Positions 1,043 through 42,107 of a stretch of DNA of 64,000 bases are shown here, in pieces; positions within the stretch are counted from its first letter, which is position 1, and the number at the start of each line of letters is the position of its first letter. This stretch comes from Lepidodermella squamata (Eukaryota > Animalia > Gastrotricha). The stretch is taken from contig JBLDXI010000026.1 of the NCBI GenBank assembly GCA_047495785.1, forward strand, positions 558,001 through 622,000, read 5' to 3'. Under the pieces are notes generated by a model. That model was not told the origin of the DNA. It did not search any database and saw only the letters and a list, made by a program, of their open reading frames with translations. Both the position numbers and the translations under genes were made by a program.

Positions 1043-1271
1043 GTAAATCCGAGATTGCTTTTCTCCTCTGTATCTGCCAAAAACTCGGAGAAACGTAGCT
1101 AGAAAGTGCGGGAAAAAGTGATCTTGTACGCCATTTATATAGGAAAATGCGATAATAAAAAGTCCATCTTAATAAAAGTGTTTCTGTATTGTACAGGAAT
1201 ACAGAAACACTATTTCTGTATCGTTTTTTAGCCTCAATCATAGGAGAATTAAATCTTCAAGCTTCCAATAG

Positions 1272-1321
1272 GAGCTTGATCATAGAGAACAGAAGTACTT
1301 CTGTTCTCTATGGAGCTTGAT
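1272..1321. mobile_element. 32-bp perfect palindrome (CATAGAG...CTCTATG, 1281-1312) flanked by a 9-bp direct repeat; probable DNA-transposon excision footprint
   Basis: CATAGAGAACAGAAGT|ACTTCTGTTCTCTATG; GAGCTTGAT at both 1272-1280 and 1313-1321. Confidence 0.7.
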
Positions 1322-1358
1322 CTCTGGCATAGAGAAAGAAGTTCTCTATGATCTCTGG
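1320..1358. mobile_element. 23-bp remnant with the same CATAGAG...CTCTATG ends (1328-1350) flanked by an 8-bp direct repeat
   Basis: ATCTCTGG at both 1320-1327 and 1351-1358. Confidence 0.7.
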
Positions 1359-1488
1359 TAACTCCAATCTCTATGGTTCTGGGTAAACTTTCGTTGTGCG
1401 TTGTGTACAAATTTCAGTGTGACCAGTGCGACGCTGGTTATATCGGCATGACCACCCGCCATCTGCATCAACGTGTTGAGGAGCACTA

Positions 1489-1547
1489 CCATAGAGCTAG
1501 TTTTAAGATAGAGGTCCTACTCCTGACTCTTAAAACTAGCTCTATGG
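1489..1547. mobile_element. Miniature inverted-repeat element (20-bp TIRs) inside the Penelope remnant
   Basis: CCATAGAGCTAGTTTTAAGA (1489-1508) and TCTTAAAACTAGCTCTATGG (1528-1547); same CATAGAG terminus as the footprints nearby. Confidence 0.65.
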
Positions 1548-1674
1548 AGCCTGCTGATCAAAAAGACCAAACTAAAAATCAGCCTCAATGTGCAGTCGGA
1601 CTCCGTCAAATTAAAATTATTTTAATTCTTGTTTTGTTGTGATTTTGATTTTGTTGTTTTTCTTCTATACTTCT

Positions 1675-1712
1675 AGTCTGATGATGGTACGAGAGCGTAC
1701 CGAAACGTCACG
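1675..1712 (+). ncRNA. Minimal type I hammerhead ribozyme (Penelope-associated), stem I degenerate
   Basis: CTGATGA(1678-1684)-T-stem II GGTACG/AGAG/CGTACC-GAAA(1702-1705)-CGTC; predicted cleavage after C1709; sits just after the PLE ORF end. Confidence 0.7.
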
Positions 1713-2654
1713 CCTTAACAATGGAATTTCATCGCTATACTCAATTCGTATTTTACTGAGAATTTACCCTACGAGGGTGCTTTTTTCAACATTGCGCTCA
1801 TTACACACTTATATTGTCACACATATTGTCCATTGTATCAAAAATGTGCGATTTGAGTCTTTCAAAAGCTGCTATAACAGAAAATGCTGTTAGGATCCCC
1901 TCAGAATCCCAGGCAATGTACATAGGCAAGTCTCTCCGAATTTAACCGACAAATCTCAGTTCTGCAAAATAATATGTGGTAATCATAGTGAATGCGATGA
2001 GAGTGCGGTCAATAAAGTATTTTAAGGACTGTTTATCATCCTCGTTTTTTTCATACGTCTGTGGATCAATAATCTGCCACCGCGTGCCTGCGAAAACGGA
2101 GGAATATAATTTCGTATATAAAGCTGTTTGGCGAAGGACATCGCTCACAAGTTATTTTGTTCTCGAATCTTCGACGATTAATGCCTAAACCGCTCCGTTC
2201 TGCTGAAACGGTTGGCGGTGTTGTGAAATGTCGCGTTTGCGATCTGGTTGTATCGCGTCGTCCCAAGTACCTACCTTCCTGCTGCGAAGCGTGTCAAAAA
2301 TTCTTCAGGCGGAACTGCCATAGAGCTAGTCAGCTGAGGTGCAAGCATACCAAAGGGAGGCAAAGCCCAGACCTCACCAGATATCCTGTCTATGTAACCC
2401 GTGGTATGTGCTCCAAATGTCGATTCGACAAATGTATTGCAGCTGGAATGACAAGTGAGGATAAGACATACAACTGAACTCAACATGTTTTCAAATTGAT
2501 TGTATATCCTTTCCAGGCAAGTTTCTTACCCAGGAGGCTTTTGGATCGAGGTCGGGATCAATATCTGAAACTAGTGAAGAGATCTCTGAGTCCAACATCT
2601 TAGTCCGGATTTGCAGTGTCAAAGTCCACTTTTTTTGCTGTTCAATGCGTCATG

Positions 2655-2706
2655 GTGGTGGCGGTGGTCGGAGCGGTCGGAGCGGTCGGAGCGGTCGGTG
2701 ACCGTG
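2655..2706. repeat. Subterminal 9-bp tandem repeat (GGTCGGAGC)n in the transposon left end
   Basis: ggtcggagc repeated about 3.5 times; related G-rich motifs occur on the opposite strand near the right TIR (6150-6190). Confidence 0.7.
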
Positions 2707-2901
2707 GTCATTATTAGCATGAAAAAAATTGTTTTTCTCATCTTCCGTCATTTATTGGATTTTCTAAATAAATAAAAAGAGCCTTTTTTGGGGTAATAAA
2801 TTACTATCATACAAATATGAATTAAAATCGTTGAATCAATCTGAACATTTGCAGAAGTAATTATTATTGATTCTATAGGTTTCCAGAATTTCTTTCATCA
2901 C

Positions 2902-4837
2902 ATGCCGGCGACTTACTCTGAGCCGACCATAGTTGATCAAGATGCAGCTAGGCGCAGCTTGTCTCGAATGAAGGGCCCCGTTTCATCAATTTCCAACCGA
3001 TCAGCTGTACATCGAGCTGAGGTGGTGCAGAATCTTTTCTTGCAGTCGTTACCTGTGGCGTGGCCTTTCAATGCAGCTATGGACGGGGCTGTTATTAAAA
3101 AAGCCCAATTAGTTGTAGAATACGAAAACATAGGCGTGGTTGCGTCGGAATGGCCATTGAAAAACGAGTCTAAACAGGAACAGGCTGGAGAAAAAACGCA
3201 GAGGTTAAGGTTGAATTGTCAACTGGTAATATTACAGCTTGATTATTATGTTTAGTTTGGTTCGCCTCGGCTTGAAACACGGCATTAATGCTTCCACCCT
3301 CATGACCATTAAAAATGAAATTGGCTACCAAAGTGTAACAAAAGAAAACTTCTATGGGGTTCGAAAGCGCCTTGCTATGCTTCACCCAATAACATCAACT
3401 CACCGCGGATTAGGCGCATATCGCTCGGTAGATTCAATCGTTAAAAAAATGATTGTTCGAGGCGACTTGGAAAAAGACGTTGTTAATGATCTACGGCTTC
3501 AGGTAAATCAAAATTACATATGGTCCTTGCTAGGGCAAAGTCAAATTGAACAGGTGGATGGCATGGCAGCTAGGACGAGCATGGCAGATGCAACAGTCAG
3601 TTCATACATTTGTGCTGCTAAGACAAAGGCCAAAGTGGGCTGCGCTGGTGAATATCAGCTGTCAATGTACCAGGGAAGCGAATCTTCCGAGATGTTCAGG
3701 AAGTTTTTACAGCCAACCATAGGCGAGCTCTCGAATATCGTTCGAGATGGCTTGAAGATCGGGGATGATTCTTACGATTTTCGATTATTGGTTTGCTGTG
3801 ACTACCCAGCTACTGTCAAGCTCTTTGGCTGTGGTCACCAGGGCGCCGATTTTCGTTGCGTAATCTGTGAAAGGAATATTAAAAAGCTCAATGTCCTTTC
3901 GCGGAAACGCCGATTCGACTCATACGAAAATTCATTTAAAGGAAAGCTTGGTTGGTCGAAAGATTTTGCCCCGATGATTCGTTTGGGTCCTGACAAACTT
4001 CTGATTTTACCTGATTTCTTCCACATGAAGGTCAATATTGCTCGTCAACTTATTGCTAAAGTAGGTATTCCTTCCAACAACTTGAAAGTTCAATATTCTA
4101 TTTAACAATAGATCATACGTGTTCTGAAAAGCCATGGGTTCCGCGATGCTATGAACGATCTTGTTTCTTTCTTGAAAACCAACTCGAAAAAGCCAAAATT
4201 TTCTATCGAGACCAAAGCCACAAAACGAGGTGTCATTAGTGTGCTTATCAAAAATTCCAATCACTACGGCATTTCCAAGGTATGAACCTAATTTTGTGTT
4301 ATATGAAATAAATTAGTTCCTAACTGAAATTTAAACTAGGCATTTGCTGAATTAGCCAAGAGAATGATTGGAAAGCCTCTATCCGAGTCATTTTTCCTAC
4401 CGGCTAACTTCCTCAACTCAGTCAAAACTTCAGGTCGTAACACTCGCAGGGGATCTATTCAGTCTCAAAGCAGCCGTCAGAAGCTACTGCTGTCTTCATT
4501 AAAGGATTTGCGAACCTTGTGTCTATCCACCTTGATGGTATTTCGGGACATCGAGATGAACCATGTGACGTCAACAGCTAAAATTATGGCTAGCTGCTAC
4601 GAAAAGATATGGCATCGAACTATTGGACCAGTTACTTCTTACGCTCATTTGCTCGGGTGCCATGTTTACGAGCTTCTGGAGAAAGGGGTCGATTTGGCAA
4701 AACTCTGCACTGAGAGCATTGAGTTGAGCAACAAGAAAAGACGCAGAACGATGGACTGTTCAATTTCAAACAAATACTCCAAACCGTGCCAGATTTTGAA
4801 AATCGAAAACATGAAGGAAAATTTGAAGCTGATTTGA
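2902..4837 (+). CDS. RAG1/Transib-like DDE transposase, 5 exons, about 573 aa
   Basis: Exons 2902-3203, 3256-3502, 3554-4060, 4112-4279 and 4340-4837 join in frame via GT-AG introns. Motifs LQVDGM, CCDYPATVKLFG..GADFRCVIC, PDFFHMKVNIA and VTSYAHLLGCHVYELL..LCTESIELSNKKRRR parallel RAG1 D600, D708, CxxC, DxxH, HxxxxH and E962. Confidence 0.85.
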
Positions 4838-5004
4838 AAATATTTGAAGTACCTAGAAACTGTGTTTCATTTGATAAATAAAAAGTTTGAACTATGTCAT
4901 CATGTCATCATTTTATTTCCGCATTAATCTTTGTCGACGTAGCTTTATTTCTTCCTCAACTTTGATTTATCATAGGCAGGAGGCAAAAGATCACAGCGTA
5001 ACCT

Positions 5005-6074
5005 TTACTTGTCAACCTCATAACCATCACGATCAGCATTATAGAACAAACGGAACTTGTCCTTAGCGTCCCACTGAAAACGAAACACGCCCGCTCTTAT
5101 AAGGCGGTGGATCACAGGTATTTGACGGGCAATGGCGCCAGTTGTTCTACCCAACTCTTTATCGAGGTCACGATCTGTTGGTGTCTTTGCCATCCAAAAT
5201 TCGATCATTTTAGCTGTAACACTTTCAAATTTTATCCCAGACCTGACAACATAGGCGAAACAATGCCGAATACGATTTCTTTCATCGGGACTCCACTCGG
5301 TTCTGCTCTTCGTTGATTTAGCTGTGAGATTAAACACTATTTTACACAATTTACACAGCAAAACAAAGGCTTACAATTTGAATAGCTGCTCGCCACATTT
5401 TGTATATGGTTCCATGACATTTTGAAAGCATAACTTGAATCTAGATCGACTCGGTCGCTGTCAGGGACGCTGAAGAACAACGGTCCTGGAGCAAACGAAT
5501 TGCCTGATTTACCGCTCTTCTTGCGCATATCACGTGAAACCGCTCGATTGGATTTAGTCGATTGGGTCGGCTCGATTGGTTCACGTTCATCGGGCTCATG
5601 TTGCTCATCAGCATCGTCCTCGCCATCATCCTCGCTATCGTCCTCGCCATCACCCCCGTCGTCATCCTCGTCATCGCTCTCATCTTCATCCTCGTCATTG
5701 TCCTCGTCATCTTCCGATGCATCTTCCTCGCCATCAACAACAGCATCACCCACGGCACCATCCTGGCCATCATCATGACCATCGACCTCGTGATCATCTC
5801 CGCCTTCAACTCCATTACGCTCCACCTCCATTTCTTGGCCGCTAACACCTTCCGCTTCGCCAGTTTTTCGCTGTTTGGCTACCCGCGGCAACTTCAACGC
5901 GACCTCTTCAGCAACAGGAGCGGCCTTTCTTCGTGTGCTTGTCTCGTTTTCTCGCGCACTCTTTCGCCGCGCATCGCTCTGCTTGCGATTGCGATCTTTC
6001 TCCTCAAGAATTGCCGCATCTTTTGTGGCTTGAATTGCCGCTTCCTTTGCTGCGATTTTCCGCGTTTTGGTCAT
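5005..6074 (-). CDS. Transposon second gene: basic N-terminus, long Asp/Glu tract, C-terminal Myb/SANT-like HTH (about 343 aa)
   Basis: ATG at 6074; a 38-nt intron (5337-5374) joins ORFs 5337..6122 and 5005..5361 in frame; motif TEWSPDERNRI...LGRTTGAIARQI. Confidence 0.7.
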
Positions 6075-8748
6075 GAAAAAAAGAATATTTAAATAAGTAA
6101 ATAATGTGGAAATAATGCTCACGAGAAATTATTAGATGATAAAAAAATTCCCGACCTAATCGACCACCCCACCGCCCCGACCACACATCATGAAGCAAAA
6201 AATGTGTGGACTTTGACACTGCAAATCCAGACTAAGATGAAAGTCAGATTAATTTCGCTGCCGGTTGCGCCAGAATCATTTTTCGACAATCCTACGGAAA
6301 AGCTGGTTCGAACTTCTATTCACGCTTTCACCGTTCTTCATGATCTTGAATTCGTGAGCTTGGAGCAACTAATGAAAGGTTCACTGTTTTCACTTGAAGC
6401 CTGAATTTTAGGGTCCACTGAAAGATAGGTCCGATGCCGCTGAACAGCTCATCGATTTACGGTCCCGCATTGTTCAACGAATGAGCTACAACGTTGAACA
6501 TGTGAAAGCATACCAATTTCAGTTTTTAGGCTAGAAGTAGTTTGTTTAATATTGTGCTTAAGTATTTGTTGACCACAGAGACTTGGGACGAGATCAGCAT
6601 TGAAGATGTTGAACCAGGCCGTGGGTTTGCCTCTGGAAAAATGAGCTCTGTTTACCACAACCTGTCTGGCGGTTTGAAACCATCCTGGTATGGAATGGAT
6701 GATAACGTGAAGGAGTTGATTTATCAGGAATTTCCCTACTTGGCGGTAAAACAATTCTGTGAAGTTTCCATTTTCTTTAGCAATCAATTCCAGAAACTGG
6801 AGCCAGAATATCATCTACTGAAAAAACTGCTGAGCAAGCTTGCTCCCACTTTCATCGAAGCTGCATTAGTTCTGAGCATATCAATATTTCACGGTATTAA
6901 GAAACCATGAGATTTCAGCATTTCTTAATGCCGAACTTTCCAGATGAGACTGGCAAAAATCGCCGAATCCAGCGCTTGCAAAAAACGCTTATCGATGTTC
7001 TGCGGAGAGTAATAAGCGACAGGTACGGCGATAGCCCTGATGTTTTGAATAGCCGCATGCAGCTTCTTGGCCAAAGCGTTACGACTACTGTTCGGCTGCA
7101 AAAACTCGCTCTAACTTTCTTTGAACATGAAGCCCACGACTTGGAGTTTTGCAGTTCAGCTGCTCAGGCTCTCAATATGCAGCGTGATTCGCCAATGAAC
7201 AATGATTGAAGATGTTTTGAGATGACAAAATAACACATTCTGATCCGGTTTTTCAAGTAAAATTGTTGACTGTTGGCCCTCATTGAATGACAAATTCATG
7301 CATATTTTAAGAAGTGAAACGAGAGTCCCGCAAATTCTTTTCATTTTACAGCCGAGGATAACGGCACAACTAGCAATGTATTATTGATAAGAAATCTCCC
7401 ATAGCTAGACATTTCTTTTCAATATGTTGCTTTAACCTTGATTATGACGATTTTCAAGTTGGACAAAAGCGAAGGCGACGTCCGCGCTAGGTACTTCGAA
7501 GCAGACATCTACTAGCGTGCATTTCCAGGCCTCATGTTGTTTATTTTCACCGCCTAGTCGATACTATTCTGTAAGTAATGCGCGTGCGTAGCGTAATTAC
7601 CCAGAACTGGAACTAGGGTCAGAACGTTTTTGATAGTTATATGGGTCACCTACCTGTCATTTTTACTAGCGTTCAGGGTGCCTGGATAGGTGATCAGAGT
7701 GATCCTGGAGCTGCCAGCTGCGTGGGATTCTATATTTGCCAAAATTATAAGTGCTTTCATCAGAAAATAAAGCAAAGTGAAGAAATTGTGATTTGCTTGA
7801 GATTTTAGATTCTCCACTAAATCACGGTCCGAAACCTCTGAAAATATACGGAACAGTGGGCTGAATCTTCGTTTTCTTGTATCGTCCAGCCCTCCCCTCC
7901 CCACCCCCTTCCTTGGATATACTTTCTTGGAGAATTCACTGCATTACGATTTCAGTTCAGCAGCAGGCTATAGTATCGAGTTTCACGAAATGCGTAGCAC
8001 AACCTAAATCTGTCCGCGACTTGATTTACAGCTTAGAAATTAGCTCGCCAGGGTGTTTGCTACACATGTCGTAAAAGCTAGGATAACATTTTGCGTGTCA
8101 TAGATGTAATGATGTAATGATAGATCATGGAGGCATTCGATTTTTTAAGACAACAGACAATTCATTCTGCTTTACCGTCATGCATTATTAATTCCTGCAC
8201 TCAGAAAATATAATACAGACTCATTTCTGCGTGTTTTGAGCCTAACAGGTACATCTATGGGATAATACTTCGAGTTCAGATATGTCGGGGAATACGTTTT
8301 CTAGCGTGGGGATTAGAAGACAAAACCGGACATTTCCTGTTACCCTGTTATCCGCCGGACTTTGTTTTCAAAAGGTACTAATAGCGTGGACCGCGGGCCG
8401 CCGTTTGATGAAGGAGAGGGCCGTTTTATAGGAGCCAACTCCATATTAATATCTCCTACAAATACATATTTTGTATTGGATACCTAAATTAATGGTCAGT
8501 AATTTCAGTCGACAACGCGAAAAACAACCTCGAGAAGCTACCGTGACGGCCAAGATTAGCAACCACACCGTTTTTCCCAACCCGAAACTTCTAACAACTC
8601 TAAACACCGTGGCTAAGGACTCAAGCAGTTACCGCTTCTTTTGATATTAGTTATTAGTGCGTAAGCTTTGAGAAAAAATTGAGAATGAAATACTTGAGAT
8701 CCGACGTTACCGACGAATTTTGCTGTTCATGTCATTAAACAGCTGATT

Positions 8749-10807: not shown

Positions 10808-11623
10808 TCAGTATTCGCCGCGACGGTCATGGTGGTTCATTTGTCCTTCCTCCCGGCGATGGTTCCAGGCACCGCGACGGTGGTCGCGGTGATCATTGCG
10901 AGCCTTTCCGTGCAATTCAACATGTTTACGACCCCTGCGGTGGTCTTTGCTCATCTTTCCGCCATGTCGCTCTTCGCTCGAGTCTTCATCGCGGTTGTGG
11001 CGCCTCTTGCCCCCGAATCCACCGCGATGGCCGCTGAATCGGCTGAAACCGCTGAATGGACCATGGTGGCCTGCAAATCGGCCCATTTCTCCGAATCGGC
11101 TCAATTTTTCGAATTCACCACGACGACCGCCAAGGTGACCTGAGAACTTTTCGAAGCCACGTTGCTCTTCATCGCTGTCGCTTGAATCTTTATCGTGTTC
11201 GTGATGTCTCTTGCCACCGAATCTACCGTGACGTCTGGAACCTTCCAAACCGTGGTTTTTACCGCCGAATCTTCCGTGGGGTCGCATAGCTCCAAACTCT
11301 CCGTTATTTCCGCGGATTCGGCTCATTTCTTCGAAGCCACCATGACGGCCACCAAGGTGTCCACGGAACTTGCTGATACCACGAGAACGACCATGTTCCT
11401 CTTCGTCACTGTCGCTGCTGTCACTGCTATCGCTGTCATCGTCATCAAATTTGCCGCCATGTCGGCCGCCGAATCCCTTTCGGCCAAATTTGCCCATCAG
11501 ACCACCGCGTCCAACCTCCTCCTTTCCTTTGCGGTCGTCGCCTCCGAAGGGCGGACGATGGGGCTCGGCCATGGTGACTGCGACGAGAGCAGCTAGAAGA
11601 GCTACTAATACAAAGTTACGCAT
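10808..11623 (-). CDS. Secreted Gly/Arg/His-rich repeat protein with acidic DSSDSDEE blocks (271 aa, intronless)
   Basis: Signal peptide MRNFVLVALLAALVAVTMA; three degenerate repeats; TATA box upstream; paralogue of 20176..21395. Confidence 0.85.
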   Translation of the reverse strand: MRNFVLVALLAALVAVTMAEPHRPPFGGDDRKGKEEVGRGGLMGKFGRKGFGGRHGGKFDDDDSDSSDSSDSDEEEHGRSRGISKFRGHLGGRHGGFEEMSRIRGNNGEFGAMRPHGRFGGKNHGLEGSRRHGRFGGKRHHEHDKDSSDSDEEQRGFEKFSGHLGGRRGEFEKLSRFGEMGRFAGHHGPFSGFSRFSGHRGGFGGKRRHNRDEDSSEERHGGKMSKDHRRGRKHVELHGKARNDHRDHRRGAWNHRREEGQMNHHDRRGEY

Positions 11624-11697
11624 GTTGAAATATTCAACCTGTTCTGTTACTAAAGGTTTGCTCGCTTTGAAATGATTGAAACCTGCTGCATGAGAGG

Positions 11698-11726
11698 GGC
11701 TTTTATAGCCAAAATACCACAGGTCA
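11698..11726 (-). promoter_or_regulatory. TATA box with adjacent AGGTCA/TGACCT half-site
   Basis: CTATAAAAG on the minus strand about 80 bp upstream of ATG 11623; AGGTCA at 11721-11726; same arrangement at 21468-21491. Confidence 0.5.
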
Positions 11727-12615
11727 AAATTGCTGGTGGCAAAACCCACTTGTATTCATAACTGGGGCATATTTTTTAACGAAGGAGTAGCTGGGACCAC
11801 AGTGGATAGAACCCACCAAGGCAAACTCGTTGCTATCATTGTGCCCTTATCCTTCATTCAATTGATTTATTTCATGAAGTTTTCGTTGATTTGAGGAGCG
11901 TGAACGTTTTCGGTGGCTACGGCGTCGTGTCACCACCAATTTGACATCAATAATTTTTTCCTTGATTACCGGTTTTTCCATTACGTTGATGAGTTTCCAC
12001 GTGATGTTTTTTTGCGTCTTTCATGAAAAAAGTTAGTAATAAGGGAAAGAGTCTTTCTGGCCTGAGGGCAACCACGAGAGCACGACTACTCTCACTCACA
12101 TCTCTCAGTTCTAGCCATACCGACCAGGCAAACACTACGAGGCCACGATTACAGTGTAGGCATGAAAAAGTGACTTCTTATGGCTGATTTGTAGCATCAA
12201 GAGGCGAGAATAGAAGTTACACATTATTACCGGCGAATCGATTATCAGCGTCACTTACCACGGCGGTTCGTGATCTTCGCCGGAATGACAGATTGATATG
12301 GGAACTTTCAATTTTGATTATCTGATGCTATCACAGCCACTACGTGTTTCTTGAAAGTTTCGCAAATGAAATTCTGATTAAATATTCAACAGCTAAACCT
12401 AATTAACGCCATGACGTGTGAAAGTTCTTAATCTGATGACTGTTTTCCGGAATAGAAGTAGCATGGATAACATATCATTAATCTCGCGAAATGACGGACG
12501 TGAAACTATGTACTCCGCATATTTACCTGTTATACGCTCGACACTCGAGGGCGGGGTAGAGCAATGTAATCTGATATTTTTTATTTCAGATTTAATATCT
12601 TCAGATTGACAAACT

Positions 12616-13935
12616 ATGACTAAATGCCCCGTATGTGATTGCTTCGTGGTACCGCGTGAGAAATATCAACCGCGAACCTGCGATGCCTGCCAGAAATTTT
12701 TCCGGCGGAATTGCCAACGCTACAGCAAGCTAAAATGTCGCCATCATGATAGACCATCATACCAATCGGTTGCTACCATCTACGTCGCCAGAAAAATGTG
12801 TGGTAAATGCCGCTTCGACCGCTGTTTGGCAACAGGAATGCAAAGTTTGTTATGGATTATCTCAATCAAAGAAGCAATTAATTCAAACTTAAAATAGGCA
12901 AGTTTTTATGCGATGATGCGAAAATCGCTCGAAACAGACACGCAAAGGCTTCATCTTTATGCGACCCTGAACCGACACCAATTCTGAGTAAGACTCCGGA
13001 AATGGTTGTTGATGACCCGAATACGAAAATAGCGATGAGGTCACTTCGAGCTTTCACCGTTCTCCATGGTCTTGAATCCGTAAGAATCTTTCTTCCTATC
13101 TTTGAGTTAATTCCACGTATGAGTTCTTCAAAGGCCCCTATGAAGAATTCATCCGCACTTGATACGCTACAACTACGGGAGAGTCTACTCCAACAAACTG
13201 CTTATGCTACTGAACTTTTGAACACTTACGGCTTTTGCTTCCTGGGTGAGTCCCTGTATGATCGAAGTAAACATGGAAGATGTTACGATCCTTTTACTGA
13301 TCCAGATCTTGCTCCAGGCATTACAAAGCAGGACTTTTGCGATCTGCGATCTTCATCAATAATGCACATGGTAGCAGTTTATCACAATTTGCCAAGTTCA
13401 GCGAGCCCCTCATTGCTTGGAATCCCCGATCAGGTCGTGCCGTTGTTTGATCGCTTGTTTCCGCAGCTAGTGGCGGTAATGATTTTTTGAGCGCTGGAAG
13501 AATTTGTTTAATGATCGTCCACACAGAAAGCGATGCCAAAAATAAACAATTTGAAGATGCAACTGGACAAGTTCAACCCAACTTTCTTGGAAGCGTCGCT
13601 CATGCTGAGTGTTTTAATTTTTCACGGTAAGACCCTGACGTACTTAAACCGTGCAGGATGATAATATAAGGTTTTCTATAGATTTTTCGGGCAAGAATGC
13701 CCCTATCATGGAACTTCAACGGCAACTTTTTTCTGCTATGCGTACTGAAATGCTGCATGCTGCCAGAGGGGATAAATCCTCAGTCGACGCTAGGCTGCTA
13801 ATGTTTCGCCAGTGTGTCCAAGCTGTTATTGATTTTCAAAAGCGTACGCTGAGTGAACTGAAGCTAATAGCCCTGGAAGATGCGTCACCTCAATTCAAGA
13901 TGTTCACCAATATTCTTAATTTAGGTGAATCTTAG
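12616..13935 (+). CDS. Atypical nuclear-receptor-like gene copy 3 (close paralogue of copy 2, opposite orientation)
   Basis: DBD CPVC-x14-CDACQKFFRRNC; LBD exons with PTFLEASLMLSVLIFH. Confidence 0.85.
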
Positions 13936-15954: not shown

Positions 15955-16995
15955 ATGATTTCTGCTGTAATTTTGCCCGTACTTCTCTTCGGTCTAACTT
16001 CAGGCCAATACACAAGCCATGAAACAGGTTGGACCCATAATGGTGGCGGCGGGGTGCGCTACATCGATCAGCAGCACGTCGGCTGCCCAGATGGCCGCGT
16101 CCTGCGCCAGTTCCAAATGCAAGGCCATGGCGACTACATGAACTACCGTTACCAGTGCCAGCAGCCCGTCAACCACGGCAACACCTGGATGAGATACTCC
16201 GGCTGGCGGGGCATGTCAAAGGTCTGGGACCTACCGAACGCCCCAGTCGATTGCGGAGCAAACGCGATGGTCAAGAATTTCCAGCTTAAAACAAACCCAG
16301 GGAACCAAGACGAATTCCAGTATGAATACACCTGCGCCTCGGTTCAGGAGGATTCTTGCGACAACCACCACACCCAATGGGTGGGCGAAGGCAGCGGCCG
16401 TAACTGGCAACTCACCCCCTTGGATGTCGCCTGCCCCAACGAGAGGCCCCATCTTCAAAATTTCGTGCTTGAGGCCATCAGCGGGCAATTACGGTACAAA
16501 TACCGATGCTGCTCTGCCAAGGTGATCCACGAAACCTGCGACAACCCAACCGATCAATGGGTCGTCTTCCGGACCATTGACAACTTGGGAAGCAAGATTC
16601 CGCTCAAGCTGAAATACACGAAAACCGTCGGCATGTCGACTTCGACTTCAAGCAGCGAAAGTGGCGGTTCGAAGGAGACCTTCTCCACTGAAGTTTCCGT
16701 CTCAGTCAAGCAGACGTTCTCGTCCAAGCTCGGCTACAGCTACGTCACGTATCACGACTGGCGCTACGAGGAGACGAGCACGTTTTCGGGCAGCATTCAG
16801 ACTTCGGTCGAATTCGAATGCCCGGCTCGAACTGAGTGCGACATTATGCAGGTCCTAGGTCAGTGTGGCATCTATTACGTGCGAACTGATGATATCAAAG
16901 TCAACACGTACGACAAGGAAGACCCGCGCCCTGGCAAGCCGAGGAACGTTGGCTACTACAACGCGAAAAATCACACAATCCAATGGCTCCATTAA
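15955..16995 (+). CDS. Secreted protein: three dermatopontin-like Cys repeats plus Ser/Thr-rich beta-pore-forming-toxin-like C-terminal domain (346 aa, intronless)
   Basis: Signal peptide; repeats of C-P/G-x-x-x-x-L/V-x-x-F-x(n)-Y-x-Y-x-C; C-terminal YTKTVGMSTSTS...FSTEVSVSVKQTFSSKLGYSY..DW...SVEFECPARTECDIMQVLGQCG; TATA at about 15896. Confidence 0.75.
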   Translation: MISAVILPVLLFGLTSGQYTSHETGWTHNGGGGVRYIDQQHVGCPDGRVLRQFQMQGHGDYMNYRYQCQQPVNHGNTWMRYSGWRGMSKVWDLPNAPVDCGANAMVKNFQLKTNPGNQDEFQYEYTCASVQEDSCDNHHTQWVGEGSGRNWQLTPLDVACPNERPHLQNFVLEAISGQLRYKYRCCSAKVIHETCDNPTDQWVVFRTIDNLGSKIPLKLKYTKTVGMSTSTSSSESGGSKETFSTEVSVSVKQTFSSKLGYSYVTYHDWRYEETSTFSGSIQTSVEFECPARTECDIMQVLGQCGIYYVRTDDIKVNTYDKEDPRPGKPRNVGYYNAKNHTIQWLH

Positions 16996-17801: not shown

Positions 17802-18767
17802 ATGCTTTTCAGTATTAGCTTCCTTCTGAGTGTTCTGATCGGCGTGACCTGGGGCCAATATACAAGCCATGAAACTGCGTGGACGCATGATGGCGGTGGG
17901 GGTGTTCGATACATCGATCGACAGTATGTCGGCTGCAACGACGGCTGGGTCCTCCGCCAGTTCCAGATGCAGAACAAAGGCGATTACATGAACTACCGCT
18001 ACCAATGCCAACAGCCGTTGAACCACGCCAACTCGTGGTGGCGTTACTCAGGCTGGAGGAGGATGTCGAAAGTCTGGGACCTGCCCAATGCCCCGGTCGA
18101 TTGCGGCTACAACGCCATGGTCCGGAATTTCCAGTTCAAAACAAACCCGAACAACCAAGACGAGTTTCAATACGAATACGTTTGCACATCCATCCAACAA
18201 GACCAGTGCGACAACCACTACACGCAATGGGCGAGTGAAGGGAGCGGCCGGAACTGGCAACTCACCCCGTTCAACGTTGCCTGCCCGAATGAGAGGCCAC
18301 ATCTTCAACATTTCGTGGTTGAGGCCGTAAATGGTCAACTGAGGTACAGGTACGGTTGCTGCTCATCCAAGGTGATTCATGAGACGTGCGACAACCCAAC
18401 CGATCGATGGGTCGTTTTCAAAACTGTGAGAAACATGTACAGTGGGGCTGCTTTGACTGAAACCTACAAAAAGCAAACTGGCATGTCACGGTCAAGCGAA
18501 ATCTCCAACAGTGGCGGCAACTCTGAGCAGTTCTCCAGCGAAGTAACAGTCAATGTTAAGAACGTGTTCGCGACTAAGTTGGGTTACAGCTACGAGACTT
18601 ACCATGACTGGCGCTTTGAAGAAACCTCGTCGTTTCAGGGCTCAGTTCAGGTGGAAATGGAATTCACTTGCCCGCCTTACACGGACTGTGAACTGTACCA
18701 GGTCATGGGACAATGCGGCTCTTTCTTCGTCCGCACCGATGACATAAAGGTCGTAACAACGGATTAA
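17802..18767 (+). CDS. Tandem paralogue of the dermatopontin-like plus beta-PFT-like secreted protein (321 aa, intronless)
   Basis: Collinear with 15955..16995 over its full length; N-terminal repeats highly similar, C-terminal domain more diverged. Confidence 0.75.
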   Translation: MLFSISFLLSVLIGVTWGQYTSHETAWTHDGGGGVRYIDRQYVGCNDGWVLRQFQMQNKGDYMNYRYQCQQPLNHANSWWRYSGWRRMSKVWDLPNAPVDCGYNAMVRNFQFKTNPNNQDEFQYEYVCTSIQQDQCDNHYTQWASEGSGRNWQLTPFNVACPNERPHLQHFVVEAVNGQLRYRYGCCSSKVIHETCDNPTDRWVVFKTVRNMYSGAALTETYKKQTGMSRSSEISNSGGNSEQFSSEVTVNVKNVFATKLGYSYETYHDWRFEETSSFQGSVQVEMEFTCPPYTDCELYQVMGQCGSFFVRTDDIKVVTTD

Positions 18768-20175: not shown

Positions 20176-21395
20176 TTAAAAGCCACCGGGGCGGTTCCAG
20201 GGTCCACGGTTGCCACCTCTGCGGGGGCCCTTGCCCATCTTTCCGCCATGTTGCTCCTCACCGCTGTCGCTCGAATCGTCATCGCGGTCAAAACGTCCCT
20301 TGCCACCGACTCCACCGTGGGGCTTCATACCTCCGAAACCGGGGAATCCACCACGTCGACCACCGAATGGGCGCATTTCTCCGAATCCACCACGGCGACC
20401 ACCAAAGGGACCTGGAGGGAATGCTGGCGGGCCTGGAGGGAACATGCCGTGCCTATGTGGGAGACCCTGTCGCTCCTCATCGCTGTCGCTCGAATCGTCA
20501 TCGCGGTCGAATCGCGGTCCCTTACCACCAAAACCACCTGGGTAACCACCGAATGGGCGCATTTCTCCAAATCCACCACGGCGACCGCCAAAAGGGCCCA
20601 TTTCACCGAATCCACCGCGACGACCACCAAAAGGGCCTGGTGGGATAGCTGGGGGTCCTGGGGGGAAGCGGCCAGGACCACGGGACGGGCCATGACGCTC
20701 CTCGTCGCTGTCGCTTGAATCGTCATCGCGGTCATGAGGTCCCTTACCCCCAAATCCACCATGGGGTTTCATTCCTCCAAATCCTTCAGGGCGGCCACCA
20801 AATGGGCGCATTTCACCGAATCCACCGCGACGACCACCAAATGGACCTGGTGGGAATGCAGGGGGTCCTGGGGGGAAGCGGCCAGGACCACGGGACGGGC
20901 CATGACGCTCCTCGTCGCTGTCGCTTGAATCGTCATCGCGGTCAAAACGTCCCTTGCCACCGAATCCACCGTGGGGCTTCATACCTCCGAATCCGGGGAA
21001 TCCACCACGACGACCACCAAATGGGCGCATTTCCCCGAATCCACCGCGACGGCCACCGAGGGGTCCTGGCGGGAAAGCTGGGGGACCTGGCGGGAACTTG
21101 CCGCGGGAAGGACCTCGTTCATCAGAATCGTCCTGCAAGAAATGTATGCGAATGATATATGAAGAAATCAAAAAATCCTTACGTCATCATCATCGTCGTC
21201 GCTGCTGTCGCTGTCATCATCATCAAACTTGCCTCCACGACGGCCGCCAAACGGACCTCCGAATCCCTTACGGCCAAAGTCGCCCATCGGACCACCGTGT
21301 CTCATTGGAGGCGCGCCTCCCATTGGCGGACGACGGGGCTCGGCCATCGCCACAGCGAAAAGAGCCGCAAGAAGAGCTGCTACAACAAGACGCAT
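20176..21395 (-). CDS. Secreted Gly/Arg/Pro/Phe tandem-repeat protein with acidic DDDSSDSDEE blocks (about 389 aa, 2 exons)
   Basis: Signal peptide MRLVVAALLAALFAVAMA; intron 21133-21182; about four near-identical repeats of roughly 70-80 aa. Confidence 0.85.
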
Positions 21396-23333: not shown

Positions 23334-24775
23334 ATGTCAGGAGTAATGCTATGCAAAGTGTGTGCTACTGTTGTTCCGAGAAGACGTGGCTATCAGCCAA
23401 CAACATGCGAGGCTTGTCAGAAGTTTTTTCGAAGAAACTGCCAGATGAAACGGCCGCTACGTTGCAAACACTCGCCCATGTCCGGAAATGAGGACAACGA
23501 AGTCACGTCCTCTAACCGCCGGCACATTTGTCCTAAATGCAGGTTCGAGAAGTGTCTATCAATCGGTATGCAAAGTAAGTTGAAATACAGCTTGATTTCC
23601 CTTGTAAATAATTCTTCAAAACAGGCAAATTTCTTAAAGAATCATCGCATGACCCCACTTCGAAGGAGGACTCTTCAGCATCCTCTTCGATGAGCGATAG
23701 TGTTAAAATTAGCAAGGACTTGATAACTCCTGGTCCAGTTATAGCCAAGGAAGAAACAACATTCCTGATTCCGCTTGTTAGAGATCCTGTATTTGTTGAC
23801 GGATCAGCTCCTGAAATAATAATCAGAGCATCTTTGAATGCTTACCCGGAGCTTCACACGCTTGAATTCGTGAGTTTTCCACCCTAGGAGCTGATTCTAT
23901 TCAACCCTGTGCTTTTGTTTTAGGGGTCTTTGAAAGATTTACCTCTATCCAGAATGGACATGGGAGCCATGCTTGCAGGAACCCTCCAACAAGCGCAGAG
24001 CTACCTATCGGCTTTGAATCGATACAGCAAACCCTTCTACGGTTCTTTTTTGCTAATTGAAGTATCTTCCGATGACGGGTTCTTTCAGATGCCGTACCAA
24101 CCATGCGAATTGACTCATCGGCTCTAACAGCGAATCGCATTGCTACTATTGTCAATATGATCGGGCTCTACTACAACTTGCCCAACTGCTTTGGGTGGAC
24201 TTATTTCGGCTTCCCCGATGATTTATTCCCGATATTTCTACAGATTTTTCCTCAGTCAATGGTAAGTAGTATAAAGTTGTTAGCAGACATTGCAACATAC
24301 ATTTCGGTTTTGGACAAATCAGAAGTCCTTCGAAATCACGAAGCAGCTAAGGCGTACCCTATCCGAGTGGGGCCCTTCGTTCACCGAGGCCTCTCTATTA
24401 ATGAGCGCTGTTATATATCACGGTTTGTTACTTAGCTAATTAACACCGTCCCAATCGATATTTTCTACTGCAGATGCTAAAAATGTTCAAATGCAAGTCG
24501 TGCGAGCTTTTAAGATGCACCTCTCTAGAATTTGTAGTGGAAATGTTGACCTAATTCGGAAACGAAGTCTCCTGTTCGCTCGATGTTTTCAGCTGACCCT
24601 CGAGGCTCAAAAAGAGGTACTAGCAATGGTTTCAAATCTCGGGCAGTCATCGCAATATTTTGGCGCAATAACGGAATTCTTTGGTCCCGATTTGTTTGGC
24701 TCATCTGAAGCAGCAGGAGTGGTGATAACTGCTGTATCACCTAGTTCCTCAAATATTGATGTTAAGCTGGAATGA
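23334..24775 (+). CDS. Atypical nuclear-receptor-like gene copy 4
   Basis: CKVC-x14-CEACQKFFRRNC...CPKCRFEKC-GMQS; LBD exons with YYNLP and WGPSFTEASLLMS. Confidence 0.85.
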
Positions 24776-31156: not shown

Positions 31157-32469
31157 ATGCTGCTGTTAAGCTTGTTGCTGCAGTATCTGATTATCGTCGT
31201 GGTATTTTTGCTTTGTTATGTAATTGTTTCAAAGTCTTGAAATGGGATTATAGAAACTGGCATCCTGCTTGCTGTTCAACAAATATGTCGACTGCCGGCT
31301 ACCAGGCGACCCCGGTATATGCCCGGGTAACTTCCCAATGTTCTATTACGAGGCGAAGGAGCTCAAATGCATCGAATTTGTGTTTTCTGGTTGCGGAGGG
31401 AATACGAACCGATTCCGAACAGAAGAAGAATGTATGGGGAATTGCACGGGCGTCCTCGCAAATTACCCGCTATCCCCCGAAGAAAATCCGGCTCGTAAGT
31501 AAATTGAGCTACTTCAATCCCTCACTTGCCTTAATTTTCTTTATATTTTAGACGAGAGGTGCCAGCCCCCTCTTGACAGTGGTTGCTACAACTCTTACGA
31601 CCTTCTAGTCCTTCGATACACCTTTGACGCTCAAATCGGAGCTTGCAAGTCGTCCTACTACTGCAAGTCTGACTGGAATGATATCGGATTCGATGGCGAA
31701 GAGGCCTGTAACCGCAATTGTGCCTATCCAACGGTAAAACTCGAATTAACCCACTTTTTCCAGCAATAATTATGGTTTTTAGATGAAACCTCGAGCTGCA
31801 ACTCCTCGTGCAGCGGCTAGGCCTTCAGGCACTACTCAGGGTCAACAGCAGTTTATGAGAACTTTGATGACCCTAGCTACCCCTGGAGTCATTCGCCACA
31901 TTTCCCCTCGAAATATCTATCACCGCATCTACTACGACTGCGGAGAACCTTACGCAAATCGGGGTAGAATCACCTCGATCGAAGACTGCGCCGAGTACTG
32001 CGAGGGCCTATCAACGTGCAGCGTCATAATCTTCAGCCCAGTCGATCGATGGTGCCATGTCAAAAAGAACTGTAACAGCCGGACGAATACAACACGTTTG
32101 ATTGGGGACGGCAAGGAAGCTTGGCAGTTAATCGGGCCAATCAATCCTACTACAACTTTCCAGCCAGACCCAGTTAGTCCGACGGTTCAACCCGCCCTGC
32201 GAAGGATTTTCAACGACTCATCAGATGTGATGGACCGATTTGTACGGTTAGGCGGGTCTTGTCAAGGCCCTGTCGTTCAAAGTAACCAAGTCGCGTCTGT
32301 ACGAGCTTGTGCCCAATTATGCGAAAGTTACGGAACTTCTGATGAAGAATGTTTCGGCTTTGTTTACATCAGCGATACAAGGAAATGTCACCTAATGTCG
32401 AGCTGTATGCATAACCGTGTGATAAATGGCCCACCGACGTGGCTAAGGCTTTATAACAGAAGGAAATAA
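31157..32469 (+). CDS. Secreted protein: 2 Kunitz/BPTI domains plus 2 PAN/apple domains
   Basis: CRLPGDPGICPGNFPMFYY...FVFSGCGGNTNRFRTEEECMGNC; second, atypical Kunitz CQPPLDSGC...; PAN motifs CAEYC...C..IIF...CHVK and CAQLC...CFGFVY...CHLM. Confidence 0.85.
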
Positions 32470-38374: not shown

Positions 38375-41300
38375 ATGGCAAAAATCAAGCTCAGCAACCA
38401 GCTCACATCGTTTTGTGTAAGTTTCGAAGAATTGATTGAAATAATCCTCCTTAATATTAATATGAATTTTTAGATTCTACTTTCGCTCTTCACTTTCGAG
38501 CTGGCCGCGGGCGTTGAAGAATTGCCGGTCTTTGATAAAAATGTCAACTGCCGACTGCCGCCGGAAAGTGGTACTTGTTCGAGTTACTACTTTCCTATGT
38601 ACTACTACGACCCAACAGCTGGAAAATGTAGTCAATTAGTAAGTCACAGACCGCTTCGCTAATTTATATTCGCTATTTATTTTAGAATATTTTTATTAAC
38701 CGCTCACACATTGGGTGAAGCGGAAACAATTTTCGAAGTTAACAACAAATTCCTTTTCGCTTATCTCTTGCGATTTTGGATCAATATAGAATTTACGAAA
38801 ATGCGGCAAAATTTGAAATTATATCGATCCTATTTCAAAGATGAAAATTACTTTCGTGATAATCAAAATTATTCCAAAAATTCAAAAAATGGAAACCGGA
38901 TATTCCAGTGAAGCAGAACTTGATAATTGATTTCAGTGGTCAATAATTATTTTAAAATTAGGCATTGCATTGTGCAAATAATTACCTTGAGGATTTGAAA
39001 TTAAAATCCGATTTTTTCTGAATTACTTTTTTCTGTGGTTGATTTACTCACAAAATCTCAGATTTTAGACATTATAAGCTACTGGTTACCGGTTTTTTCT
39101 CTTTAGTGAATTTTTTTTCATTCAATCCATTCGTAATTCTTCAGACCGGATGTAAAGATGGTAGGTACTCACTCATCACCTGTATCACTCATCATCTTTT
39201 TAGAAAAAAATCTCCTGAGTGATACCAAAGCTCATTTCTTTTTTTCCGTCAAGCATTACTAATTTAGAATTTTTTTGGATTTCAGTTAAAGTTTTAATTA
39301 ACAAAAAATGACAGGCGCACACAGTTTTAATTAGTATGCTTACAGAGAAATGTTCATCTTTTCTTTAATTGATTAATTATTATTCTTAATTTTATTCCCG
39401 ATAGGTTTATTCCGGCTGTGGTGGAAACAGTAACCTATTTACAACGGAATCCGATTGTTTAACAGCCTGCGCTGGCGTGTCGGACTCTGAAGATCGGAGA
39501 TCGCGGCAAATCCTTAACTCGCCGATTCCGGTTCCGCCGTCTCAGAGCAGTCTAACGAGCAGCAACTCGGTCAATTACGTCTCGTATAGCTCGCAACAAA
39601 CGCAACAGCAGCACAACGTCGTACCGCAACCTTCTATACAAATTCCTAATTCAATCCCAGAAAACCTTCCATCTCCGTCCAACTGCCAGGCGCCGTTGGA
39701 CGCAGGCTGCACCCAGGATAAACCTTACATTTTACTTCGATTTTATTTCGACGAGAGAAGCGGATCATGCAAGGCTGGGTTTTATTGTAAAAACGACGGC
39801 AATTACCGGGGCTTTGAAACTGAAACTCAGTGCAACACCCTGTGCACGTCCGTTGCTAACAAACCAGCCTTGCCGTGGTCTCCGCTTCAACTCCCGGAAA
39901 TTCCGACGGCTCAATCTGCATCACAGCCGTTGAACTTCCCGAGTTTCCCGCGTATGCCTGAGGCCATTCAGCAGTTGACGGCGCTACAACCTGTTGAGCA
40001 AAATTCCCAGCCATTAGGCGGATTGCAGGGTATGCAGATGCTTCAGCCGGTTCAGCAAGCGTTGGGTAGGCAAAGGAATGGTCCGGTTGAACAGGTGGCG
40101 CAGCAAATTCAGCAGATGAGATTTATGCCTCAGTTAGCTGCCCAGGCTCAGCAGCAGTTTCCGGCTCAGAACAACCAACAGCAGCAACAACAGCAGCAAC
40201 AACAGCCATCTAGATTCTTTGATGGCCAGCAAATGCAACAGCAAAATTCAGCCCAGTTCCAGCCGCAGCAACAACCGCAGAGGCCTCAACCGCCTCAGCA
40301 GCCAACAAATTTCGACCAAAATCAGCAAAACTTCCAATCAGGTCCAAGTCAGAATCAACAAATCAATCAACAGCAATGGCAGCCGTTTATTCCTCAGGAA
40401 GGGCAGCAGCAAATTCCACCGCAAAATCAGCAACAATGGCCACAGTTTCAATCTAATCCTCAATCTCAGAATCAACAGCAAAATCAGCAACAGTGGCAAC
40501 AGAATCCTCAGCAGCAACAACAACAGTGGCAGCAAAATCCACAACAACAGCAACAGCAACAGCAACAACAACAACAACAACAGCAGTGGCAACAGAATCC
40601 CCAACAACAACAGCAGCAACAATGGCAACAGAGGCCTCCAGAATTTCAACCGTTCCAACCTCAAATGCAGAATTCTAAGATTGATTCGCAGAATTTCCAG
40701 CAACAGCCTCCTCAACAACAGAACAGGCCACCAATGCCAATGCAGCCTCAAAATACCCGATTTGAACCCATTTTACCCGTTTCAGTAAATTTGCCCCTGA
40801 AACGGGAGCATTTGCAGAACGTTTTACCTATTGATCCTCAACAACAACAACAGCAAACTCAAGATAATGGTTTTATGCTGCAGCCTGTTGAAGCCCAGCA
40901 GCCTTTGCCTTTACGGTTGCAGGAACGCCGGGAACCCCCTGCACCTCGGCCTGTTATTGTAAGCTTTTCCGCGTAATTTCTGGAATCTTCCTTAATTTGC
41001 CGTAATCCTCTTAGCCTCAGTCTTCATTTCGTGTGCCCAACGACATTGCGCAGGTCAGTAATTGAGCTGTTTGTATTTTTTGACAAATTGATGCTAATTT
41101 TTTTTGTTCTTGTAGCAGCGAGACGCTATACTAGCTAACCCACAACTTTTCGTGGTCAGTCGTAATAGGCCACAGGTTGAAGAATTCGCTGTCAATTGTA
41201 AACTGTCTTTAATCTCGAGTTTGATATATAGGATGCTCCCGTTATTCCATCAGTCCAAGCAGCGTCCGGAAACAGCGATGAGCCGATTAGGCAGTTGGTT

Positions 41301-42107
41301 AACATCAACCCTCCGCTGACTCAGTCCGACAATCCTAACGCGGCGGCGGCTATACTCAGCCAATACTACGCGCCAGCTTCTTTCCGGTGTCGAGGCGAAG
41401 ACCTGGCAGTTTTCATTAACACAAACTCGCCGAGCCGTTGCGCGAGTCTCTGCGAATATCGCAACCCTGAATGCACGGCCTTTTCATTTTTCGGCAACCA
41501 CCGCCTGTGCCAGCTGAAAGCTAGCTGCGCCCGAGACGACGCTTTTATGATCCCTAGCGAGGAGACCTGGATCAGGGCGCAGAGGGTTCCGCAGAACGAC
41601 GATATCCCAGCGACTTTACCGCCTCCCCCGCAACGGGAGGTGCCATTTGAATTAAACATACCGGCCGGTCCTGTAATTTCTCAACGCATCTATCCTTACT
41701 ACGTAGTCCCTTTAACTGCAAGGTCCAGAACTACAACAAAAGAAACGCCTACTTCTTCACTTGTCGACGCTATGGTTTGGGAGAGGCCGAAGCCCTCGAC
41801 GAGGGAGCCTGTTGTAGTAACAGCATCACCCCGGCCTACAGTCGCGCCGACAGAGGAGCCTCAGTTCCTACCGAAATACTCATCGTTAGGCTACTACTGC
41901 GGTGGCGATTTGATAAAGCGGGTAACCGGCGTCGAGTCACGTGACGAATGTGCCCAGTACTGCACGGAGTACAAATCCGAGTCACGCACGAAGCCGCTGT
42001 GTTACGTTTTTACATACAGCCGTAGTATAATGCTGTGCGAGCTTCAAGTCAACTGCTACCAGCGAGATCGCGACAACACAGCCGCTGAAACGTGGATCGT
42101 CAAGTAA
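38375..42107 (+). CDS. Secreted protein: 2 Kunitz domains, long Gln-rich linker, 2 PAN/apple domains (paralogue of 31157..32469)
   Basis: Exons from 38375 give CRLPPESGTCSSYYFPMYYYD..C | VYSGCGGNSNLF, with Kunitz 1 split by a large intron (about 38638-39404). Kunitz 2 is CQAPLDAGC...; polyQ; PAN domains in 41295..42107. Confidence 0.8.
40175..40860 (+). repeat. Coding CAA/CAG polyglutamine with QQQWQQNP repeats
   Basis: Direct sequence; lies in the 499-aa ORF 39477..40976. Confidence 0.9.

Follow-up and report, generated by a model that had tools for sequence, protein, structure and literature searches.

The question raised by positions 558,001 to 622,000 of contig JBLDXI010000026.1 (GenBank assembly GCA_047495785.1, Lepidodermella squamata), a stretch of 64 kb called the window below, is to which group of DNA transposons a two-gene element that interrupts one of its nuclear-receptor genes belongs. 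One gene of the element codes for a transposase and the other for an accessory protein, its partner. A first-pass annotation had found a RAG1-like transposase core, the gene layout of ProtoRAG and an acidic, non-kelch partner united in this element, and had concluded that the combination fits no nameable family and may represent a RAG-related lineage. According to the analysis described here, the element is, with somewhat better than even confidence, an autonomous cut-and-paste transposon, probably still mobile, of the clade that comprises CMC (CACTA/EnSpm, Mirage and Chapaev), Transib and RAG1, and its family is missing from annotated protein databases. Judged by sequence and fold searches and by the published traits of CMC elements, it is most aptly called a new family, and perhaps a new lineage, of this CMC-Transib clade, CMC-like in behaviour and equipped with a novel, conserved accessory gene.

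The element and its insertion site

The transposon proper is 3,644 bp long and occupies positions 2596-6239, with inverted ends that have AA on either side. The left terminal inverted repeat begins with 5'-CATC and lies at 2596-2636 on the forward strand, with a 34-bp core at 2596-2629. The right repeat, which ends with ...GATG-3', lies at 6199-6239 on the reverse strand with its core at 6206-6239, and each repeat was delimited by its match to the other. The core reads CATCTTAGTC[C/T]GGATTTGCAGTGTCAAAGTCCAC and is identical in 33 of its 34 positions, with one mismatch; the inverted repeat stretches to 41 nt at 90% identity. When up to three mismatches are allowed, the 34-mer has two matches in the entire window, while none is expected from shuffled sequences, which rules out a chance inverted repeat. 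The 34-bp ends with a single mismatch and the CAT...ATG termini given by the first-pass annotation are thus confirmed.

The AA dinucleotides at 2594-2595 and 6240-6241 are direct repeats of each other and constitute the left and right copies of a putative 2-bp target-site duplication. The 5-bp flanks, TCCAA on the left and AAAGT on the right, are unlike each other. The length of the duplication can be judged from the host gene. The interrupted exon, which codes for the hinge and the start of the ligand-binding domain of a nuclear receptor, is located at 2517-2595 and 6242-6386 on the forward strand and was recognized by the zf-C4 match and by alignments with paralogues. The zf-C4 exon of the same gene lies upstream on the same strand at about 2220-2467 (Pfam zf-C4, E 1.5e-07). 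The host frame upstream of the insertion point is known because the splice from the zf-C4 exon fixes it, and the frame downstream (...RTSIHAFTVLHDLEFV...) is the one conserved among the nuclear-receptor paralogues of the window. Three of these paralogues (9887-9705, 44808-44641 and 47928-47746) have the region that corresponds to the junction as one exon in one frame. The two host frames rejoin only after removal of the element together with 2, 5 or 8 bp, and since AA alone is repeated among these options, the duplication is taken to be 2 bp long. Excision of 2596-6241, which is the element and one AA, fuses ...EISES to KVRLISLP... in one frame. The earlier statement that removal of an AA duplication restores the host reading frame is therefore borne out by the zf-C4 splice on one side and by the paralogue frame on the other. 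The 2-bp target duplication, as judged from a single copy, is well supported though unproven.

The insertion has knocked out one nuclear-receptor paralogue. The downstream exons of the host gene retain their likeness to the paralogues, and such preservation is compatible with a recent insertion.

The transposase

The transposase gene is located at 2902-4837 on the forward strand and codes for 573 residues in five exons (2902-3203, 3256-3502, 3554-4060, 4112-4279 and 4340-4837). It starts with an ATG at 2902, its frame is open and aligns with homologues, and its introns are canonical (GT..AG) and 51-60 bp long. One of them, the 51-bp segment 3503-3553, is in frame with the surrounding exons. 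It was called an intron because its 17 codons are missing from every homologue and because it has GT..AG boundaries. The first-pass annotation had described two convergent, spliced and intact open reading frames (ORFs). Both are indeed open with GT..AG introns, but this intron had been missed; it adds a fifth exon to the transposase model, hence the length of 573 residues.

The candidate catalytic and zinc-binding residues are conserved in the relatives of the transposase described below. All are encoded on the forward strand: D185 in the context QVDG (3557-3559), D266 in CCDYP (3800-3802), the pair C285-x2-C288 (3857-3868), the pair H511-x4-H516 (4646-4663) and E536 in IELSNKK (4721-4723). 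The catalytic Glu and the His pair were assigned by motifs, not from a structure. The motifs on which the first reading of the locus had been built (VDGM, CCDYP, CVIC, DFFH, YAHLLGCH and TESIELSNK) are all present and likewise conserved. The candidate Glu sits within E-x-x-N-K, a motif that resembles the RAG1 segment following E962.

The geometry of these motifs is close to that of mouse RAG1. The spacing of D266 and C285 is 19, as is that of D708 and C727 in RAG1, and the spacing of H516 and E536 is 20, as is that of H942 and E962 (RAG1 numbering according to PMC4914335). The second Asp and the Glu are separated by 270 residues in the transposase as against 253-254 in mouse RAG1, and by 206-214 residues in Transib (PMC1131882).

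A further motif, G-C-G-H (3824-3835, residues 275-278), is specific to the family and nearly invariant, and it stands six residues ahead of the CxxC pair. The resulting C-x-H-x6-C-x2-C pattern could form a self-contained zinc knuckle or provide extra zinc ligands. To our knowledge, G-C-G-H is not a feature of RAG1.

Sequence and fold affinities

The sequence and the predicted fold of the transposase were compared with databases separately. Neither phmmer nor profile hmmsearch, run with the single sequence and with profiles of the N- and C-terminal halves against all chains of the PDB, retrieved RAG1, BbRAG1L or HzTransib at E<=10. A Pfam scan of the transposase gave no match to RAG1 and no DDE_Tnp_4 or other PIF-type match. 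The lone Pfam signal was a weak, sub-threshold match to PF02992 (CACTA tnp2) over the segment that begins at the second Asp and ends at CxxC, found in 2 of the 11 family members at 16.7-17.6 bits (cutoff 28.6; E 0.0023-0.0044). When 1.84 billion representative proteins were searched exhaustively by HMMER, with the largest exon as query, there were seven matches, all of them short, unnamed ORF fragments from ENA metagenomes, and there was neither a RAG1 or Transib protein nor any annotated protein among them; this rarity is to be read with care, as the source organism itself seems to be absent from the databases. A word-indexed search with the family profile produced nothing new, and scans of JGI metagenomes by protein pattern and by the DNA of the inverted end produced nothing. 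Three ORFs of the window, looked up by exact match in public assemblies, had no record there.

The fold gave a different picture. An AlphaFold model of the largest exon, which covers the N-terminal half of the transposase, was built from an alignment of eight sequences (predicted local distance difference test score, pLDDT, 64.5; predicted template-modelling score, pTM, 0.64). Its core has the order strand-strand-strand-helix-strand, and D266 lies where one of the strands ends. The best 50 Foldseek matches listed for this model in the PDB were nearly all RAG1 chains, accompanied by BbRAG1L and HzTransib. The best E-value was 8e-4 and the probability reached 1.00, with query-normalized template-modelling scores (TMq) of 0.3-0.49. 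BbRAG1L (6b40_A) had a TMq of 0.49, and HzTransib was represented by 6pqx and 6pqy. No hAT, mariner or piggyBac transposase was among the 50 matches listed. The N-terminal half of the transposase is thus clearly predicted to have a RAG1/Transib-type fold. No structure of a CMC transposase was among the matches either, and RAG1/Transib would therefore probably be the top PDB match for a CMC protein too, so that the fold cannot separate CMC from Transib/RAG1.

The RAG1-like core of the first-pass annotation consequently holds for the fold and the motif geometry but has no counterpart in a RAG1 or Transib sequence match. Similarly, its RAG-related lineage can be kept in the broad sense of an already published clade, though not in the sense of a closer sequence tie to RAG1 or Transib.

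The same results bear on a different origin, in which the element would be an offshoot of the Transib/RAG lineage itself, nearer to RAG1 and Transib than to CMC, that has shortened its duplication to 2 bp and acquired a non-kelch helper of its own in a ProtoRAG-like layout. Features shared with Transib/RAG1 are the best structural matches, the two spacings identical to those of mouse RAG1 and the long insertion between the second Asp and the Glu. Both the duplication length and the termini of Transib are variable (bioRxiv 10.64898/2026.08.26.747230), there are reports of Transib-lineage elements whose duplications are 3 bp long or TA, and Transib has been found in a nematode, the dog hookworm (PMC1131882). 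However, RAG1, BbRAG1L and HzTransib stayed out of reach of HMMER with the single sequence and with both half profiles, the 1.84 billion representatives contributed no RAG1 or Transib protein, and the sole Pfam hint points to CACTA. The duplication of Transib/RAG1 is 5 bp long as against 2 bp in the element, whose ends, starting with CATCTTAGTC, contain neither a heptamer (CACAGTG/CACAATG type) nor a nonamer like those of recombination signal sequences (RSS). The structural matches themselves lose weight if RAG1 is the top match for a CMC protein too. An offshoot of Transib/RAG is accordingly regarded as rather improbable, and assignment to the wider CMC-Transib clade is preferred.

The partner gene and the subterminal repeats

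The partner gene lies on the reverse strand and codes for 338 residues in two exons (6074-5375 and 5321-5005). Its ATG is at 6074, its frame is open and its single intron is 53 bp long with GT..AG boundaries. The partner and transposase genes are convergent and their stop codons are 167 bp apart; the tail-to-tail, ProtoRAG-like layout noted earlier is therefore correct.

The partner consists of a basic N-terminus, a tract rich in Asp and Glu (51% of residues 91-180) and a C-terminal domain. The C-terminal 104 residues have no match in Pfam and no sequence match in the PDB, and a database search with this domain found zero homologues. A model of the domain, built with only two sequences in the alignment (pLDDT 76.5), has three main helices followed by a beta-hairpin. 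Foldseek found nothing significant for it. The top match was the Myb-containing domain 3 of DNA-bound C. elegans TEBP-2 (E 0.77), and several homeodomains superpose on the model at non-significant, target-normalized TM scores of 0.54-0.64. To the eye, the stretch W-S-P-D-E ... L-G-R-T-x-x-A-I recalls a Myb repeat. It is plausible but unproven that the modelled domain is a homeodomain-like or Myb-like DNA-binding helix bundle. The partner is certainly not a kelch propeller, and the Pfam scan gave no kelch match for it. The acidic tract and the model of a helical domain with a hairpin agree with the acidic, non-kelch protein of the first-pass annotation, whereas its Myb/SANT-like label and its suggestion of an independently recruited helper are tentative.

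The DNA that codes for the acidic tract is a degenerate tandem array of a 12-bp unit (5612-5774, reverse strand), with 13.6 copies at 67% match. Gains and losses of copies are likely in such an array and may be the reason why the contigs of relatives break within the partner gene.

Just inside the terminal inverted repeats, the element carries short repeats that are candidate binding sites. A repeat scan located the left patch at 2666-2698 on the forward strand, where GGTCGG occurs four times within 3.7 copies of the 9-bp tandem unit GGTCGGAGC. The right patch, at 6151-6182 on the reverse strand, contains GGTCGG twice and GGTCGA once in mirror orientation, reading inward from the right end. 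The left patch is about 70-100 bp and the right patch about 57-89 bp inside the respective end. The hexamer GGTCGG/CCGACC has 16 sites on both strands of the 64 kb, and six of these fall within the two patches of about 35 bp each, a concentration that the first-pass annotation does not mention. Judging by the sequence, this arrangement is what would be expected of candidate sites for an accessory protein or an N-terminal DNA-binding domain. CACTA elements carry subterminal repeats to which TnpA binds.

Relatives

The closest relative, P0002, shows about 50% identity. A full-length relative at 4860-6664 of the 7,132-bp contig L001 has a core identity of about 41-44% and two intron positions in common with the transposase gene. 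On the opposite strand of L001, 173 bp past the stop codon of the transposase, lies an ORF that is homologous to the C-terminal domain of the partner (29% identity over 90 residues, BLASTP E 2e-11) and runs off the contig. A convergent partner is also present in L003, and the intergenic gap of 173 bp in the relative compares with 167 bp in the element of the window. Since L001 keeps the convergent partner, the two-gene layout is an ancient trait that the family has conserved, not a peculiarity of one copy. The inverted end of the element has no counterpart in the related loci that were searched for it; the right end of the L001 relative falls past the edge of the contig.

These relatives speak against the idea that the second gene is a passenger, that is, a captured host gene or gene fragment without a role in transposition. 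Capture of genes by DNA transposons is common, and the partner has no recognizable domain, as might be expected of a passenger. Nevertheless, in a relative of about 40% identity a C-terminal domain homologous to that of the partner is likewise encoded convergently and equally far from the transposase stop. The partner ORF of the window is intact with a canonical intron, and a protein is needed to bind the matching inverted subterminal repeats. A mere passenger is quite unlikely on this evidence, and the partner is treated below as a component of the transposon.

Contigs L001, L003, L004 and L005 come from four independent metagenome assemblies. They are 100% identical and have ends at L001 coordinates 5273, 6457 and 7132, one of which lies inside the partner gene. 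The sharing of contig ends suggests that the assemblies broke where repeats or variants of a multi-copy element begin or end. A second, diverged lineage (L006-L008) is present in the same samples. L001 also encodes, at 1233-3167 on its reverse strand, an unrelated protein of 644 residues whose D...D-L-P-A...C-G-K-C motifs are reminiscent of CACTA-type enzymes; this protein has no Pfam match and no similarity to the transposase of the window.

Comparison with known families

The hallmarks of the clade formed by CMC and Transib, named CMCT, are C(2)C and H(3-4)H motifs, termini that are mostly CA..TG, and target duplications of 2-5 bp (Kojima 2025, PMC12730594). As these features, together with subterminal repeats and a second gene, have already been described for the CMC/Transib clade, the earlier verdict that the element fits no family is not supported. 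Within the clade, the likeness to CMC extends to several properties. The element has the D, CxxC, HxxxxH and E motifs of CMC and termini of the form CA..TG, though with T/A at the third base, and its 2-bp duplication is within the CMC range of 2-4 bp; the animal CACTA element ENS1_Cis makes 2-bp duplications as well (PMC6004678). Subterminal repeats are found in CACTA, and two coding units are found both in CACTA (TnpA and TnpD) and in MIRAGE1 (ORF1 and ORF2). The weak PF02992 match falls on the segment of the transposase that links the second Asp with CxxC. Its ends, the length of its duplication, its subterminal repeats and its pair of genes make the element CMC-like rather than similar to Transib or ProtoRAG. 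The near-absence of homologues is new, as is a conserved accessory gene without known kin.

Several observations weigh against placing the element in this clade as an autonomous and mobile transposon. None of the named transposase families gives a significant sequence match, as PF02992 reaches 17.6 bits instead of 28.6 and is hit by 2 of 11 members, and the partner has no detectable homologue among known families. The fold model, which is of moderate confidence, extends over one half of the catalytic domain, and 17 of its residues beside D185 are encoded by the intron. The termini are CAT..ATG in the element and typically CAC..GTG in CACTA and Chapaev, and the products of CACTA are co-directional splice variants whereas the two genes of the element are convergent. 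One complete copy underlies what is said about duplication length, copy number and activity. Lastly, that the partner binds these repeats near the ends is purely inferred, and the fold search with the partner had no significant outcome.

Mirage merits separate consideration, because the element might be a species-specific family of the described nematode Mirage group, both of its genes being homologous to ORF1 and ORF2 of MIRAGE1, which correspond to K02E7.2/K02E7.3 and W03G1.3/W03G1.4. The host genome has a nematode-like look, with about 14 clustered nuclear-receptor paralogues and introns of about 50 bp. Mirage elements have 2-bp duplications in the Repbase classification. We know of no Pfam model for Mirage, and a blank Pfam result is for this reason no argument against such a family. 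MIRAGE1 of C. elegans is autonomous and has two ORFs (PMC5395297), a likeness to the element that is one of architecture alone. On the other hand, the seven matches of the exhaustive HMMER search were unnamed metagenome fragments without an annotated nematode protein among them, and the partner had zero matches. Any kinship with MIRAGE1 would also have to be too distant for phmmer, with the reservation that the presence of the MIRAGE1 ORFs in the library is unconfirmed. A Mirage family is a possibility that deserves to be kept in mind, although a doubtful one, and a new family of the CMC-Transib clade is the description retained here.

ProtoRAG (BbRAG1L/BbRAG2L) has the tail-to-tail arrangement of two genes in common with the element. 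Its partner, however, is a RAG2-like kelch beta-propeller, whereas that of the element is composed of basic and acidic tracts and a small helical domain. ProtoRAG proper is ruled out by the lack of a kelch partner, the 2-bp duplication and the ends, which are not RSS-like. PIF/Harbinger elements, like the element, combine a transposase with a separate small, probably DNA-binding protein that could attach to the subterminal regions and recruit the enzyme; a Myb/SANT identity of this protein is plausible but unproven for the partner. Their transposase, however, belongs to an unrelated fold family and their duplications are 3 bp long as against 2 bp. The wrong type of transposase rules out PIF/Harbinger.

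Fungal PlavakaB, a member of the CMC-Transib clade, has termini similar to those of the element, 5'-CATCA..TGATG-3' with 2-3 bp duplications as compared with CATCT..AGATG and 2 bp (PMC12730594). Plavaka is a fungal group, some families of which contain TET/JBP genes. It was compared by description only, and the likeness of the termini may be coincidental.

Possible mechanism and significance

The organization of the element suggests how it might move. Each end would carry a promoter that reads inward. The transposase would bind the inverted ends and, as a DDE (Asp-Asp-Glu) enzyme of the RNase-H fold with a zinc-stabilized insertion domain, would nick and excise the element. If it proceeds as in RAG, Transib and CACTA, excision would probably leave hairpins on the flanking DNA, and integration would take place with cuts staggered by 2 bp. 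The C-terminal three-helix domain of the partner may bind the inverted GGTCGG repeats. The partner might then help to pair the ends or to bring in the transposase, a role played by TnpA in CACTA and by the Myb-like protein in Harbinger, and its acidic tract may mediate protein contacts.

A more far-reaching proposal is that the element represents a deep, undescribed lineage of the RAG1/Transib-CMC assemblage, outside Mirage, Chapaev, EnSpm and Transib, with its own conserved, convergent accessory protein of the helix-turn-helix type. This proposal is tentative and on balance unlikely. If it were true, the element would join ProtoRAG as a second, independent example of a transposase with the RAG1 fold that has a partner gene of its own, and its small size, intactness and possible activity would make it suited to experiments. 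If the element is an ordinary Mirage family, it adds just one family to that group and its value is limited to that of a well-preserved reference copy.

Transposases of the RAG1 type are studied for the origin of a two-subunit recombinase from a transposon. A compact, intact element of 3.6 kb that combines a RAG1-type catalytic fold with a different, conserved accessory gene and matching subterminal repeats would be a tractable system for the recruitment of a partner by such enzymes and for the setting of the duplication length (2 or 5 bp). Because Pfam-based annotation does not see the family and protein databases hardly contain it, genome projects have probably missed or mis-annotated it.

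Other genes of the window

About 14 paralogous nuclear-receptor genes form a dense cluster over positions 2200-60000, to which the interrupted gene belongs. Their zf-C4 exons, such as those at 10162-9944, 12622-12840, 23352-23570, 43608-43402 and, at the far end, 59600-59367, are 42-53% identical to that of the interrupted gene. Lineage-specific expansions of nuclear receptors with such a pattern are known from nematodes.

Rfam and tRNA scans of the window were empty. Two tandem, single-exon paralogues at 15955-16992 and 17802-18764, both on the forward strand, code for Cys-rich proteins of about 320-346 residues with signal peptides and no Pfam domain. The first of them (346 residues) has no homologue in a collection of 5.8 billion proteins. 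Two long ORFs on the reverse strand, at 10811-11749 and 20179-21171, contain Gly/Arg/Phe-rich repeats that alternate with acidic serine blocks of the DDDSSDSDEE type; they have no Pfam match and, from their composition, may be secreted or phosphorylated repeat proteins. Recognizable domains are encoded by pieces at 39477-40973, 31783-32466 and 41295-42104 on the forward strand and at 61002-61865 on the reverse strand, which comprise a Kunitz domain that precedes an extreme poly-Gln/Pro tract, two ORFs with PAN domains and a disintegrin (ADAM-like) exon.

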